A DNA stretch of 64,000 nt from Podarcis bocagei (lineage: Eukaryota), in NCBI GenBank assembly GCA_964188305.1, contig OZ076893.1; one strand, written 5' to 3'. The position numbers and the translations under genes were made by a program. Below are positions 7,932-37,739 of this stretch, in pieces. Each line of letters starts with the position of its first letter. Within the stretch, counting starts at the first letter, position 1. The notes under the pieces are model-generated. The model searched no databases, was not told the origin of the DNA, and saw only the letters and a list, made by a program, of their open reading frames with translations.

Positions 7932-8547
7932 CTATGAAAGAGAGAGAGAGAGAGAGAAAGAGAAAGAAAGAAAGAAAGGGAGAAAGAGAATAATAAGAAT
8001 TACAAGGATCATCGCCAGGTCAACAACAGTGCTTACAAGCAGCACATAGACTGGAGAGTTGGTTCATTGAAATGTATTTTGTTTCAACAGAAAGTGGAAA
8101 TGGAGGTTATCAAGATGAAAAATGAAAACTAGTTAGAAACTAAAGCTGCAGTTCAGCCACTGATCCTCAACTACATCCTTCCACCAATATTGTACGTGGG
8201 TATTCGTAAGCCGGGGTAGTTAACCCCGTTTGGGTGGCCTTCCAGCCCTACTCAACAAAGTTTCCTATTTTCCCAACACCTCACTGATTTTGGCAGCAGC
8301 CAGGAAAGCAGGGAATTCAAGCAGACACAGTGCTGAGGTAGCTGCATATGGCCTTGGGGCCAAAAGAGGTTTAGCCATCCCTGCTCTTAAGGATGCATTT
8401 TGAAGAAACACTAGTATATTCCCATGACAGACAAGATCTGGTGTAATATAGTGGATATGAGACTGAGCTATGAATTTGGGAGCTCCTGGTTAAAATTTCA
8501 CCTCTGCCATGAACTCACCAGGTGGCCTTTGGTAAGTTATTCTCTCT

Positions 8548-8980
8548 CAGCGGCGTAGCGTGAGTTGTCAGCACCCGGGGCAACGCAAGTAATTTGCGCC
8601 CCCTAACCCGGGGCAAGGCACGTAATTTGCGCCCCCCCTAACCCCTAACCTGCGAGTTGCCGCTGGTGCTGCTGCCCAAACGACGCCGCTTGCCCGGAGG
8701 AGGGGGGGGCAGAGAGGCGAGGAAAATGCAACGGCCAGCAGCTGCAGCAGCAGCGACGGAGGCGGGGCTGTGAGGAGGGGCTGCCTGGCGCGTCCTCCAC
8801 GGCGAGCGCTGAGAGCTGCTGCCTGCCGGGCGCCTTCAGCCCGGGCGCCGCGAGACATGGGGCTCTGCTACAGCCTGCGCCCGAGGCTCTTCGGCGACTC
8901 CGGAGGCAGCGAGCGCGCCCCCCCCCAGATGTTGCGCCCGGTGCGGCCTGCCCCCTGGCACCCCCCACGCTACGCCACTG
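8548..8980 (+). mobile_element. Non-autonomous hAT element with captured host cargo (Pack-hAT copy 1)
   Basis: TIRs cagcggcgtagcgtg / cacgctacgccactg; 8-bp TSD ttctctct at 8540-8547 and 8981-8988; subterminal tttgcgccccctaaccc repeats; interrupts an otherwise continuous CORE-SINE. Confidence 0.93.
8651..8910 (+). pseudogene. GNAL: Transposon-captured fragment of GNAL extra-long isoform (XL-G-alpha-olf) first exon: GC-rich 5'UTR, ATG at 8857, MGLCYSLRPRLFGDSGGS
   Basis: Peptide matches the recalled human XL-Golf N-terminus MGLCYSLRPLLFGG at 12 of the first 13 residues; Kozak-like gagacATGG; very CpG-rich compared with the host intron. Recognised from memory, not searched. Confidence 0.8.
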
Positions 8981-10227
8981 TTCTCTCTTAGCCTCAGCCA
9001 CCCACCCTCTGAATTATGGGTGGCACAACTACTGACTTACCTTTCAGTCTTGTTGTAAGCATTACAGCTAGATGATGAATGTGAAGTGAACACTTGTAAG
9101 TGCTATGGAAGCACTGGGCAGGATTCACCTAACCAGCGGCAGAAGCCCTGCGTCAGGACTTCCAGTTGTGAAACAGGGCTTTCTTTTCCCCTTCTTCTTC
9201 CCTCATATGTCCCCTGAAATTGCCTTGGGATGTGTGTGTGTCATGAGAACCCACAGAGTGGTGTGCCAGGGAAGAAGAGATGGTATATTTTCATCTGGGA
9301 AGCTGGAATGCTTGCAACAGACGGAACAACTGGAAGAGCACAATGCTGAATTTGGCCCATTACAGGAACATGCCTGATTTGAGTCTTATTTCATAATCAT
9401 ATTGGAATTGAAGAGCATGCTGTCCTTTTTACTTGAATGCATATCAAAGCATTCTCACATATTCTTTGTATGTATTTTACCTGGAGAGTTGTAATGATGA
9501 CAGCCTTAGTGTTTAAGCAGTATGTAATGTTTATTCACCTACTTGACTGTGAATTTCCCCATCTTCAAAAGAATTAACACCCCCCCAAAGAAAAAAAAAT
9601 AAGGGTGTGCATTAGTACTAGTCATCTTTATTATCATTCCACTATTGACTTGACTGATATACTTGACTGATAATCTACCTAGCATGCTTTTACTTCTAAA
9701 AATGATCTATACAATCTACACATTCTCTGTTGTTTTATTTATTTATTTAAAGTGTACTGTTTGATTTTTGCTCAATTAGCAACCCTGCAAACATAAACCT
9801 ATGCTGAACATACAGGACATAAATTAAGTAAAGAAATACAAACTCAGAATAAATAGTCTTAGATAAATACTCTTTTTTGTTTGTTTATTCGTGCAATTAT
9901 ATTTGGTTTGACAACACTTATATTTTGTACTATTGATCTTCAGTCACCCCTAAGCCATCCAGTGAAATACTCAATGTAGACCCATTGCCTCACAAATGAC
10001 ACTGTCTTATATCTGCTACTTGCATTTCACAAAAGAGTCAGTTTTCACATTAAAATGTAAATAACTGATCCAAAGGGCACTGAAATGTGTCTGAACCATT
10101 CAATTCACTTAAGTAGTGTTTAAATTATCTGTTGGACATAAATGATGGTAAATCAATAATCAAAATTACACTTAACTATTGAACATGATGTAGAAATAAG
10201 ATCTTGTTTAAATAAAATAATAAATAA

Positions 10228-18148: not shown

Positions 18149-18320
18149 NNNNNNNNNNNNNNNNNNNNNNNNNNNNNNNNNNNNNNNNNNNNNNNNNNNN
18201 NNNNNNNNNNNNNNNNNNNNNNNNNNNNNNNNNNNNNNNNNNNNNNNNNNNNNNNNNNNNNNNNNNNNNNNNNNNNNNNNNNNNNNNNNNNNNNNNNNNN
18301 NNNNNNNNNNNNNNNNNNNN
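18149..18320. other. Assembly gap (172 N) truncating a NOL4 exon
   Basis: Run of n characters. Confidence 1.
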
Positions 18321-29494: not shown

Positions 29495-30470
29495 TAAAGT
29501 CAAATGGTTGGAGAATTTCTTTTCTCTGTGCTACTCCGAGCTGTCAATGCTTCTCTGGTTACTGCTGTTGACATGCAATCTGACTGTCTGTCTCCAGGAA
29601 CTGCGATCATCTGCAAGGAATTCCCACATGGTGGGCTTAATGCTTCCAGCCTTCGTGTTATGTTTGCAGACATATTTGTAACACAGAGTTGGTTGGCCAG
29701 CAGGAACAGGCCTAGTGCCAGCTCCCCGTTGAGCACATCCTCGAGGATCCTGCCATCTTCCATGCTGTGTACATGACCAAGTCAGTGTAGATGTCGCTGA
29801 GATAGGAGCGCGAACATGCTGTGGGAATGTAGGCTTGGGAGAATACATATTTGTTTGAGACTCTGCCTGCCATGTGATGCCCCAAATCTTCCTGATGCAG
29901 TGCATATGGAAGGCATTGATTGTTAGCATCACATTTTCCCACACCCTTTTGGAGAGGTGAGTCATTGCCATAGCTGTTTTGCCAATATGCTCATCCAGTT
30001 CAGCATCGATAGACAGGTTGCTGGTTATGGTGGAGTCCAGGTAGGCAAAATCTTCTACCACCTCAAGTGTGAGGTCACCAGTGCTGATGTGTGGAGTGCT
30101 GCCAGTATCCTGACCCAGGATGTTGGTCTTTATCAGGCTGATCGCAAGGCCAAACTCCATGCAGGCATGGATAAAATGGTTTATGGGTCTCTGTAGAGCT
30201 TCCTTGGAATGAGCTGTCCAGACTGTATCATCTGCAAACAACATCTCTTGGATTAGAAACCCGCCCCCACACACACACACATCAAACTGAAGGCATAGGA
30301 GAGCAAGAAGTGGGCATCCTATCTTGTTGAGCACTTGAAGAGTCTTTTTCAGCTGACCAGGTCAAAGGCCTTTGTATGGTCTATGAAGACAACGTACAAG
30401 GGGCACCTCTATTCTAGGCATTTCTTCTGCAGCTGACGCAGTGAGAAAATCATGTCAACTGCTGACCTCA
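29495..30470 (-). mobile_element. Degenerate RTE-clade LINE, reverse-transcriptase and 3' fragment with internal deletions
   Basis: ORF 29531..30334 contains EMLFADD..AHS.EALQ, LEVVEDFAYL.STI, RIGK-like and FHM.CIRKI.GITWQ; upstream K-A-F-D-L-V-S motif; frameshifted. Confidence 0.88.
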
Positions 30471-31637
30471 GAACATTGTGGCTCAGGATAAACTCTGTCA
30501 CTGAGTAATTGCAATCTGTTGAGAATTACATGGGCAAACACTTTCCTTGCAGTACTCTGCAGAGAGATTGCACAGTAGTTGTTACAGTCATGGTGGTCAC
30601 CTTTGTTCTTGTAGAGGGTTCACAGTGCTGGGGTCACACATGTCTTGTGGCACTGATCCTTGTTCTCAATACTGCAAGAGGAGGCTGTGGAGGTGTGTCA
30701 TGAGGGAGGAATTGAGGCCAGCTTTCAGCATTTCTATGGAGATTGCGTCCTATCCTGGGACTTTACCACATGTCTAAGAGTTTAAGACAATCTTCAATGG
30801 GAGGGAGGGACATCTAGCTCTTCCAAGACAGGCAGAGTTTGGATTGATAACTGTTGATTACTGTATCAGAGACTGTGTTTCCCCATTAATGCAGTTCCTG
30901 AGAGTGCTCTGCCCATCACTAGGCCCTCTTTCATTTTTATATTACTTTGTATATTGTAGCCTGTTGATTTTTCTGACTCCTTGAGTATTGAGTCCTTGAT
31001 TAAGTCCAGCATTGAAAGCATTTTTCTGCTACTTTTTTAAAATAAAAAGATAGAATATATTTTTCAATTTCTAAACATATTTACATCAAGCAAATTACAA
31101 TGATTTCAAGATCATTTCAGAATACTCATGGAGTTCTCACATTATTCATGTTGGGGGGGGGGATGCAAAACCAACCAACAACAGAACACAGTGGCACTCA
31201 AAGCACTTTCAGGGTAATTTATGATATGTCCCTGCTGGTATTAAAATCAGTGGAAGTATCTGGATCCTGTACTCAGTTTCAGTGGTATAAAGATAATAAT
31301 CCAGTGGGTAATATCAGATTTTAAAAGGCTGGAGTTTTCAGTGATAGAAGCAGAAACAATAATTGCAAGAATTCTGTTAGATTAAATTCAACTCTTCATT
31401 CTTCTTACAGTACACATTCATGGCAACTGCCTTCCTATCAGACTAGCTATCTAATCTGCTGGATCTGTCTTTAGCTACACATAGTCACCTTATTCTCTCC
31501 CAGCTAATACAATAGGAACAACCAGGGGTGCTGGAGGGAAAGTCGTTTGGAAATGTCAGCTTCTTAAAGCAAAGTTGTTGGTTTCAATTCAGACATGTTT
31601 GTACATGTTTATAGATGGCAATGAAAGCTTTAGTGCT

Positions 31638-31715
31638 TCTGTTGACACAATAAGGATACTAATACATACTGATCAACTCTGTTGACACAATAAGGATACT
31701 AATACATACTGATCA
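31638..31715 (+). repeat. Tandem duplication of a 38-bp unit (40-bp period)
   Basis: tctgttgacacaataaggatactaatacatactgatca occurs twice, identical. Confidence 0.95.
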
Positions 31716-32013
31716 TGAAACATGTGTGATTCATCCAACAGGAAGATTTCACAGGTCTTCTCAAAATACTGTATTTCAGATCAGAAATGAAAAACTTGCA
31801 GAATGTATTTCTGGTTGATAAAATATTGGTATTTGTTAGTATACTAATATGCACGTGAGAAATAGACAGTGTGAGCACAAAATAGCAGAAACAACTAGGT
31901 GTCAACAACTTTTCCAATTTCCTAATTTGCAAAGCCCTTGAACCGTTACAGTAGACTTTTCTTCTTCCTAATCTATGCTCTTGTAATATCTTGTGAACAT
32001 GGAAGCATCTTAC

Positions 32014-32297
32014 CTTGCTTCCATTTTCTTTTGCCTCTTGCTCCATCTTAAGATCAGATACTAGGATGTTCTTGTACTTGTTCTTTCCATCACTGCTTTG
32101 GTCATCTAACCTGTATTCTGACGTGAGCTGAGCAGAGAAGGGACTGTCACTCAGATTCAGCGGCTGTTCATCCGGTTCCAGAGGTGCTTTGCCATTACTG
32201 TTGGCTTCTGCCACTTCCCTGCAGTGTGTTCCCCCTGAAGCATTGGAACTGTGTCCTGCAGTCTCATTGCCGTTAAAACTCTCTGCAGCTGAATCAT
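32014..32297 (-). CDS. NOL4: NOL4 internal coding exon (~human exon 6), 284 nt: (D)DSAAESFNGNETAGHSS...DLKMEQEAKENGSK
   Basis: Inside ORF 31699..32400(-); acceptor tgtttcatag, donor AAG|gtaag; phase 1 to 0; peptide matches NOL4 (EQPLNLSDSP..AQLTSEYR..GKNKYKN). Confidence 0.97.
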
Positions 32298-33879
32298 CTA
32301 TGAAACACATGGATTTACAGTTTTTCAATGGCATGTCATCAATATTATCTTTATACCCAAACAACAAAAAATTACAAAAAACCCTACAACCTGCTGCCAC
32401 TCACACAACATTTCCAACAGTTCAGCTGAAAATATTTATGTGATTACCAGTCACTATTGACAGTCACAGAACAGTTAAGAAAATTTCAGCCAGAACAGAT
32501 TCTTTAATGACCTAGGCAGGTGGAAAAGGAAGGGCTTATCTTTCCACTTTATACGTGACATCATGACTCACTTGCTTAAGTTATATGGGGGGGATCTTTA
32601 CATATCCCAATTATTATGAATTATAGTTCTTTAAACCAGCAAAATATACAGTATTGGAATAGAAAGTTCCCATCCTCTGATGGAAGGAGACTTCCTCCAA
32701 TGGAAAGACTGCTTCTATGAGGGGATAATGCTCATTCCATCAGTTGGAAGGAAGGAACTATTATAGTCATCCTATTGGGAAAGTTTGGATGATCGTAGCT
32801 CAGCTTAATAGGCCAAAGCATGGATGAGCCTTTTGGCTGCACACAAAGCCTCTTGGCTCCTCCCTTCATGGCAGGAATAAACCAGGAAGTCTTCCATTAA
32901 CTATAGTTTCCTGTTTCATCCATACTGGGGAACCTAGGGTTAACAGCTTTGGAGGAAAGCAGACTACAGTATTTAAATCAACAGCAAATCATGACTTAAT
33001 GCCCAGGCTTGTCACAAAGTTTTCCACTATAGTTTCCCTGTTTGGTTGAAATGGAAAACTATATTATCTTAAACAAAATTGTGTCCTTTAAACACTTTTT
33101 TTGTTCTGAAGACATTGTTGTAAATAAACATGGTATGAAAAGAAAGTGCAGGTTACTTCTGCCTCTCATGTCAATCCTTTCCCAGGTCAATCAAATAAAA
33201 AAAAATCCAGCCAGACCAGAAGTGTCAGGACAGCATTAGGACGGTTACAGCAATAATCACAGCAGCTGCATAAAAGGTGGGATGCTGGAGGGTCAGACAT
33301 GGAAATAGACTGAAGGACAGAACAGGGATTTACAAGTGAGGGAGAGGGTGAGAAAATAGTACAGAAAGAAGAGGGGTTGCAAGGGAAGCCAGAGAGGTAT
33401 GAGAGAGTAAGAAAGGAATCCTGGGTTGGTAAGCCCAGTGATGAGCCAGTAAGAAAATGAAAGGGGGAGTGGTGGAGGAAGTGAATTACTATGTTAGAGA
33501 AAATAGAATGGTCCAGTGATAAGATTGGATCCAAACCTTTAGTTTAGGATAAGGGAGATAGTCTGGGGCTATGAGGATTATTGTGAGCTTGACAGGGAAT
33601 TCTGAGTTCTATCAATATGTTTAATATGGTTTTCCTAACAATTAATGAATTGTTTGTGCTGCTGAAATAAAATGTAAAGTCAATATACCGGCCATAGTTA
33701 GCCTTCCAATATTTTTCACATTGCTTTGTAATATCAATAGTATTTATGCTATTAATTGCTTGGTTATTGACCAAAAAGCAAAAGTAGTTTACAAACTGTC
33801 CCGACATAAAATTAGGAACACTTTGTTGCTTTTAAAAGAATAGTGATGAAAATGCATTGGGATTGTTTTGACAAGGTTC

Positions 33880-36755: not shown

Positions 36756-37739
36756 CAGTGGCGTAGCGTGGGGGGTGCCAGGGGTGCCAGCCGCACCGGG
36801 CGCAACACCTGGGGGGGCGCGAGTCCAGAGGGAAGGGACAAGCAATCGAGGCTTGGTTGGGGTGGGGGGTCGTCGTCTCCGCCACTGCTTCTGTTTTCCG
36901 CTGCGCTGAGGTGAGCTGGGCGCGGCCAGGCATGCAAGCGCAGCGCCTGGCCAAGCGCTGCAGCCTGGGGAGCCGGCGCCTTAGCGCCTCGCCGTCGGCC
37001 GCGCAGCCGTTGCCCAAGCTCGACAACTCGTGGAGGGCGCCTCTCTCTCTCTCTCTCTCTCTCTCTCCCTGGAGGGGAGGGGCTTTCCCTGCTCTTTGTT
37101 CCGTTTGAGCAAACACAGCAACGAAACAGAGCAGGGTGGGCAGTAAGACCCTGAGGCAGAATGCAGGAAAGCAGCCACTTCCTCTTTTCAGGTTTCCCTT
37201 CTCCGGTACCTACCCACCCACGTTTATTGCGAGGGAAATCTAGCTGACTGCAGGGAAGGGGTTGGGTGCATGTAATGTGTGACAAAGGCATCAGGTGTAC
37301 GTCTTGGGTGGAAAGGGTATAAGGGTGGGGAGGTAGAGTGCATTTAAAAAAACCAAAACATTGTGGATTTAAACAAGGAAAATGTAGCATAATCTACTGT
37401 TTGTAAGGGCCCTTTGGGATTGGTTTTACCCATCTCAGACAGTTAGCTCATAGTGTAAATAAAGATGGCTGTTGTTTACATTTTTTTAATAAAAGCATCA
37501 ACAACGATCCTTTTGCACGGTCTGTTGTGCTGTGTTGCAGAACTTTTTGCAGTTGCAGGATTAGGGATGGTGTTCTGTGCTACAGTGGCATAGCGTGGGG
37601 GGTGCAGGCTGGGCCGGCCACACCGGGCGCAACATCTGGGGGGCCGCGCTCCACGGGTTAGGGGGCGCAAAATCCACGGGTTAGGGGGCGCAAATTACTT
37701 GCCTTGCCCCGGGTGCTGACAACCCACGCTACGCCACTG
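36756..37739 (-). mobile_element. Same hAT family in opposite orientation; composite element carrying ~760 bp cargo plus a nested empty copy (Pack-hAT copy 2)
   Basis: TIRs cagtggcgtagcgtggg / cccacgctacgccactg; 8-bp TSD ggtctcat at 36748-36755 and 37740-37747; 36756-36821 is approximately the reverse complement of the right end of the 8548-8980 element. Confidence 0.93.
37583..37739 (-). mobile_element. Minimal empty 157-bp hAT MITE (core unit of the family), nested as the end of copy 2
   Basis: Both TIRs present (cagtggcatagcgtg...cacgctacgccactg); two ccacgggttagggggcgcaaa subterminal repeats; no TSD of its own (left flank ctgtgcta differs from right flank ggtctcat). Confidence 0.9.

Follow-up and report, generated by a model that had tools for sequence, protein, structure and literature searches.

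A recently inserted non-autonomous hAT-type element with abundant CpG-rich cargo, probably derived in part from a GNAL first exon, in a Podarcis bocagei contig

The window, a 64,000-nt stretch of Podarcis bocagei contig OZ076893.1 (assembly GCA_964188305.1), carries at 8548–8980 a 433-bp element in which two terminal modules enclose 262 bp of GC- and CpG-rich DNA, referred to here as the cargo. The parts of the element were delimited by aligning the three family copies present within the window, supplemented with BLAST. They are listed below together with the other family members.

8540–8547, no strand: left copy of the TSD (8 bp, TTCTCTCT), recognized as a direct repeat and as the 8-letter overlap at the empty-site joint 8539->8981 of organism E
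8548–8650, minus strand: terminal module A, with a 15-nt TIR (8548–8562) and 31–33-nt subterminal tandem repeats (8573–8636) carrying GGGTTAGGGGG-type motifs
8651–8912, plus strand: cargo, GC-/CpG-rich, 262 bp, delimited by composition and by alignment to the cargo-free 157-bp copy at 37583–37739
8848–8912, plus strand: start-codon block with 18 codons (MGLCYSLRPRLFGDSGGS), for which similarity to XLGalpha-olf has been proposed
8857–8991, plus strand: chimeric ORF of 44 codons and a stop, within a 73-aa ORF with a GTG start (8770–8991)
8913–8980, minus strand: terminal module B, with a TIR (8966–8980) and 53 nt ending in a G-run/GCGCGC beside the cargo slot
8981–8988, no strand: right copy of the TSD (TTCTCTCT), recognized as a direct repeat
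36756–37739, plus strand: another member of the family, inverted relative to the first and flanked by TSD GGTCTCAT; it comprises a further module B, ~760 bp of unrelated cargo and a complete cargo-free element
37583–37739, plus strand: complete cargo-free element of 157 bp, within the 36756–37739 member

The inverted ends of the element are 15 nt long (consensus TIR CAGYGGCGTAGCGTG); CAGCGGCGTAGCGTG at 8548–8562 and CACGCTACGCCACTG at 8966–8980 are complementary at 14 of 15 positions, and the window contains five occurrences of the end motif where 0.02 would be expected by chance. Module A and the right end of the cargo-free copy (37674–37739) share 94% identity, and module B is 88–92% identical to 37583–37649 and 36756–36821 by alignment and BLAST. 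The cargo has a G+C content of 72% and a CpG observed/expected ratio of 0.84, compared to 0.11–0.19 in the flanks. The subterminal repeats of module A (8573–8650, and likewise 37640–37700) contain telomere-like GGGTTAGGGGG motifs, and module B terminates in a run of nine G.

An 8-bp TSD together with ends starting with CAGYG is the signature of hAT transposons. Both features were found here: 8-bp TSDs surround 8548–8980 (TTCTCTCT) and 36756–37739 (GGTCTCAT), and the short TIRs, which in hAT elements begin with YARNG, start with CAGYG. Transposition itself is documented by a filled site in one species and a clean empty site in another (see below). Inspection of the long ORFs of the window revealed neither a transposase nor an autonomous partner, so that the assignment to hAT is based on the ends and the TSD, and the element would have to be mobilized in trans. 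Long ORFs of 267 and 233 aa are on the minus strand at 29531–32400; the 267-aa one has a weak match to RVT_1 (reverse transcriptase; E 0.002, below the Pfam cut-off), and this region probably represents the remains of a LINE. At 18149–18320, 172 consecutive N mark an assembly gap or a masked stretch. The initial annotation had placed the element inside an intron of NOL4; no host exon was recognized among the long ORFs of the window.

The cargo is missing from the 157-bp form of the element, in agreement with the earlier view of 8548–8980 as a TIR- and TSD-bounded unit that contains sequence foreign to the bare element. It also differs from the insert of the 36756–37739 member, although that insert of ~760 bp begins at the same module B junction, that is, occupies the same slot. 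The latter member has a GC-rich insert with a (CT)n run and three ends inside a single TSD pair, a composite structure that may record an intermediate of uptake or recombination.

The state of this site in other genomes was examined in Logan contigs from two DNA runs (organism A, apparently the species of the window, and organism E, a sister species) and two RNA runs of organism F; contigs were placed on the window at 8440–9090 with a likeness of at least 80%. Contigs of organism A span both junctions without a single difference (8440–8574 and 8956–9090), and the insertion is therefore real in the window's own species. In organism E, one contig of single-copy depth (77) joins position 8539 straight to 8981, skipping 441 bp, the length of the 433-bp element and a single copy of the 8-bp TSD, and exactly eight letters fit either side of the joint. 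This contig matches 110 nt of the right flank perfectly. No 8539->8981 joint was found among the contigs of organism A, so the contig of organism E represents the orthologous empty site; the possibility that it comes from a paralogous repeat copy is rejected on these grounds and by its single-copy depth and perfect flank. Since this exact site is empty in the sister species, with a single copy of the TSD, the insertion is young; as judged from shares of sampled words, organisms A and E are ~1% different. The empty site lacks both ends as well as the cargo and has a clean 8-bp TSD footprint, showing that ends and cargo arrived together.

The host DNA around the insertion is moderately repeated, with depths of up to ~5,000 on the left (8440–8547) and ~600 on the right (8989–9090) where single-copy depth is ~100, and may be SINE-like. 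A BLAST search of the window with the reconstructed empty host site found no second copy, and an Rfam search of 8200–9400 gave no match.

The initial annotation had interpreted the cargo as carried at the DNA level rather than as a retrocopy, and this interpretation stands: there is no poly-A, no spliced exon junction and no variable-length TSD, and the unit is instead bounded by TIRs and an 8-bp TSD, which excludes retroposition.

The abundance of the family became apparent from summed word depths. In the DNA runs of organisms A and E, contigs of single-copy DNA have depths of 96–120 and the unique flanks have summed depths of ~100–270, compared to 97,000–620,000 for the cargo and 1–6 million for the terminal modules (1–4.8 million for module B). 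Summed word depth is a proxy rather than an exact copy number, and on this scale the cargo is present in roughly 10^3 copies and the ends in tens of thousands. Dozens of different contigs of high depth overlap each position of the cargo, and the majority of the placed contigs are at least 90% alike. Cargo-free joints connecting 8609 to 8921/8922 were seen in 12–17 contigs. Among the contigs placed on 8440–9090, the contexts of the cargo were either linked to the transposon or ambiguous, and no module-free parental copy was detected.

The cargo itself varies. Word depth declines inward from both terminal modules, and within the cargo it changes in steps: it is 342,000–623,000 in the block 8858–8901, compared to 97,000 in 8836–8857, and drops to ~6,000 at 8846–8847. 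The block 8848–8912 is attached to module B in more copies than is the sequence upstream of 8848, and six contigs have an alternative sequence ahead of 8848. Alternative sequences join the cargo at 8652/8653, 8703, 8732 and 8848; a joint 8732->8851 is also present among the contigs, and longer variants have additional sequence at 8652/8653. The depth steps and the alternative sequences upstream of 8848 indicate that the cargo is probably a mosaic, so that the 206-bp "UTR" and the ATG block need not derive from one source. The window copy departs from the family majority at 8667, 8673, 8756, 8799 and 8817; four of these five differences are CpG-to-TpG or CpA changes, that is, CpG decay, and the window copy is therefore slightly decayed.

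The RNA contigs of organism F include diverged cargo together with module B, one of them 510 nt long (25 mismatches and 41 gap letters) and another 768 nt long. They are transposon copies embedded in transcripts and not GNAL mRNA. The terminal modules (8548–8650 and 8913–8980) reach depths of 3,000–28,000 in the RNA contigs of this organism (runs X25 and X29), and copies of the family are thus widely embedded in its transcripts.

Given that the cargo has ~10^3 times the single-copy depth in two species and is present in a third, the capture was probably a single, ancient event in a master element that took place before organisms A, E and F diverged. The copy in the window descends from that element by a recent insertion and belongs to an abundant, cargo-bearing subfamily of a very abundant, MITE-like hAT family. 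This contradicts the earlier suggestion that the capture was tied to this locus or chromosome: since it did not take place at 8548–8980, the inference of a source on the same chromosome loses its basis.

The start codon at 8857–8859 lies in the context gagacATGG (G at both -3 and +4) and opens a frame (MGLCYSLRPRLFGDSGGSERAPPQ...) of 44 codons, which runs through module B to a stop codon, TAG, at 8989–8991, directly after the right TSD copy (8981–8988). The coordinates given for this ORF in the initial annotation are confirmed, as is its description of GC-rich, UTR-like sequence ahead of the ATG, which spans 206 bp (8651–8856). The cargo contributes only 18 codons and 2 nt to the ORF, and the other 26 codons are made up of module B, the TSD and the flank. 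Codon 2 is CGG (Arg) in ~70% of the family depth, whereas the window copy has G at 8860 (GGG, Gly); a variant with a 43-bp deletion (joint 8823->8867, depth ~2,500) eliminates the ATG altogether. Codon 2 and the ATG thus both vary, and the chimeric ORF has not been kept among the copies. Most likely, it is accidental, a truncated fragment whose frame happens to continue into the terminal module and the flank. The ORF was rejected as the beginning of a transposase left over in a deletion derivative, as it reads outward and begins 124 bp from the terminus. Two antisense ORFs of 96 and 118 aa also cross the cargo (minus strand, 8568–9001). They are rich in Ala, Arg, Pro and Gly, and the ATG that starts the 96-aa ORF overlaps the sense ATG; judging by their composition, which is as expected of GC-rich DNA, they are most likely not coding. 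What has been demonstrated at 8548–8980 extends to an ordinary young transposon insertion, and to neither a functional ORF nor functional cargo.

The source of the start-codon block was sought at the protein level. Human XLGalpha-olf, the product of an extra-long form of GNAL, presumably starts with MGLCYSLRPLLFGG, in which case 12 of its first 13 residues are identical to the start of the ORF. On this basis, we consider it quite likely that the block 8848–8912 comes from exon 1 of GNAL XL, a statement that applies to this block and does not cover the 197 bp further upstream. The Arg codon of the family majority at position 2 makes it slightly less GNAL-like than the window copy with its Gly codon. 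The likeness extends over 18 codons at most, after which the frame enters module B with no continuation into the remainder of the exon or the G-alpha domain, so that the block is at best a truncated fragment and not a gene copy. GNAL is known to have a long isoform with a separate exon 1 of its own (PMC12408007), and the published variant p.Lys113* in XL exon 1 (PMC12408007) agrees with the register of the XL sequence that we assume, which lends slight support to it. The XL exon is held to predate the 2R duplication (PMC5896119) and should therefore be present in lizards.

Searches with the ORFs provided no homologue. Comparison of the 44-aa ORF with 1.84 billion cluster representatives using phmmer, where clustering at 50% would hide XLGalpha-olf behind a Gs/olf representative, yielded one match, to a bacterial tandem-repeat protein; this match is spurious, its score being summed over six repeats. 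A word-indexed search of the 73-aa sense ORF against proteins of 40–128 aa, a range that full-length G-alpha proteins fall outside, returned four word-sharing candidates, none with E<=10, and a search of the PDB produced only a chance match to a P450 (E 1.6). No paper containing the ORF peptide, with or without the Met, was found in full-text literature; the supplements of a paper on G-alpha evolution contained no match, and the literature on variant names in NM_182978 offered nothing useful.

Taken together, these observations are likely to be explained by a non-autonomous hAT element in which CpG-island-like DNA was captured once and amplified to ~10^3 copies, with a GNAL-XL-derived block as part of this DNA and a recent insertion at 8548–8980. 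An ancestral element would have taken up the 262 bp of CpG-island-like DNA once, between its two terminal modules, most likely through template switching during repair or replication at a G-rich, GC-rich junction, as proposed for Pack-TIRs. The switch may have occurred at the junction next to the G-run/GCGCGC that ends module B and to the GGGTTAGGGGG repeats in module A; one idea is that G-rich structures adjoining the cargo slot could stall polymerases and thereby favour switching. Short runs of letters common to the junction (TC and TCCA in the alignment) are compatible with microhomology. Cut-and-paste transposition would then have raised the chimera to roughly a thousand copies, which appear to have diversified by internal deletions and further uptake, with the transposase presumably supplied in trans by an autonomous relative outside the window. 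The block beside module B (a 9-nt leader, the ATG and 18 codons) would most likely stem from exon 1 of the extra-long isoform of GNAL, and the 8548–8980 copy would have inserted recently in a moderately repeated stretch, duplicating an 8-bp target.

Two other origins of the cargo have to be considered. The inner 262 bp could be native sequence of a longer, perhaps autonomous, progenitor that was kept in a deletion derivative, its likeness to GNAL-XL being a coincidence or due to an incorrect human sequence. Nested deletion derivatives of a longer element would show the same inward fall in depth from both modules, and the longer variants with extra sequence at 8652/8653, as well as the protein, PDB and full-text searches that returned no GNAL match, fit this possibility too. 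We nevertheless regard it as unlikely. Cargo-free members prevail in the family, unrelated sequence directly adjoins the same junction in another copy, and the cargo has the CpG-island make-up usually seen in host promoters and first exons. Moreover, an outward ORF starting 124 bp from the terminus is not what a transposase start would look like, and identity at 12 of 13 residues, beginning with the initiator Met, would be far more than chance could produce, provided that the human sequence given above is correct. That same run of identical residues argues against derivation of the cargo from a host CpG island other than that of GNAL, for example from another gene with an MGxC acylation-type start, or from a patchwork with a few dozen bases per gene. 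The mosaic look of the cargo, with its depth steps, the six contigs with other sequence before 8848 and the joints 8732->8851 and 8823->8867, speaks for a source of this kind, but the searches yielded no competing candidate, and we consider this improbable.

The remaining alternatives concern the locus rather than the source. A functional novelty might have arisen at 8548–8980, either in the form of the 44-codon ORF or through the CpG-rich cargo serving as a promoter or first exon; the start context is favourable, the composition is CpG-island-like and certain animal Pack-TIRs are transcribed as chimeras (PMC8277862). With 26 of the 44 codons contributed by the terminal module, TSD and flank, with codon 2 and even the ATG variable between copies, with the insertion missing from the sister species and with no homologue from the phmmer, word-indexed and PDB searches, such a function appears very improbable. 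The local scenario, in which gap filling from a nearby GNAL gene on the same chromosome produced a one-off, single-copy Pack element at this site, would follow the rule that animal Pack-TIRs mostly occur as single copies formed in cis (PMC8277862). It can hardly be reconciled with cargo at ~10^3-fold single-copy depth in two species and present in a third, or with the clean 8-bp TSD footprint of organism E, which lacks the whole unit and indicates that ends and cargo came together; we give it almost no credence. We therefore retain the single ancient capture by a non-autonomous hAT element, followed by amplification, as the preferred explanation.

If the GNAL origin and the copy number both hold, a vertebrate cut-and-paste transposon has spread the CpG-island start of a gene to ~1,000 places and has been mobile between sister species. 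In that case, repeat libraries would mask the first exon of a real gene as a transposon, surveys that require a unique parent would undercount animal Pack elements, and scattered CpG-rich, ATG-bearing modules would constitute raw material for new promoters and first exons. A broader reading, which we offer tentatively and would not yet favour, is that a lizard hAT family that is currently or was recently active repeatedly takes up host promoter or first-exon fragments at one fixed slot and amplifies them to numbers like those in plants or greater (~10^3 for the GNAL-type cargo alone), seeding CpG-island-like, ATG-bearing modules at insertions that differ between sister species. If true, this would be a vertebrate Pack-transposon system operating at a scale invisible to unique-parent pipelines.

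Several known systems resemble this family in part. The Ds-type derivatives of Ac-like hAT elements are short, consist only of terminal and subterminal transposase-binding regions and are mobilized in trans. Plain deletion derivatives of this type contain only native sequence, whereas the inner part of the present element is not constant from copy to copy and is lacking in the 157-bp form. In plants, Pack-MULEs and other Pack-TYPE elements are TIR elements that acquire GC-rich gene fragments, often 5' ends, and move as chimeras. The 8548–8980 element likewise has GC-rich, apparently captured sequence within a TIR element; in contrast to it, Pack-MULEs belong to the Mutator superfamily, have 9-bp TSDs and long TIRs, reside in plant hosts and are individually usually low-copy.

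Among lizards, non-autonomous hAT/hobo families of Anolis carolinensis incorporate extraneous DNA (Novick et al. 2011, PMC3014272). These families share with ours the lizard host, 8-bp TSDs, CAG-type ends, young age and a composite structure with foreign DNA, and differ in that other transposons, rather than gene starts, make up most of the filler; the Anolis ends in the portion of the table that was compared do not include the TIR CAGYGGCGTAGCGTG (PMC3014272). A literature search for papers pairing Pack-TIRs with lizards found none.

The closest counterparts are the animal Pack-TIRs, of which 370 were reported in 100 genomes, 208 of them on hAT elements (PMC8277862); Pack-hAT-N8_XT of Xenopus tropicalis, for instance, carries 291 bp of the 5'UTR of CAPSL (PMC8277862, Tan et al. 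2021). Like these Pack-hATs, the element at 8548–8980 is a non-autonomous hAT with intact ends and a TSD that contains a few hundred bp of DNA, here apparently non-transposon and presumably from a gene 5' end, and is spread by transposition. Ends and cargo move as one unit, as the TSD flanks the whole of it and the empty site lacks both. Only four animal Pack-TIRs were found to be multicopy, the example shown having three copies, and the survey pipeline demanded a unique parental hit (PMC8277862), so that amplified families would be missed. Unlike the cases in that survey, the family described here is known without a parental copy, and its word depth implies ~10^3 copies. It would belong to the known Pack-TIR/Pack-hAT kind, and its distinguishing feature is scale, that is, copy number.
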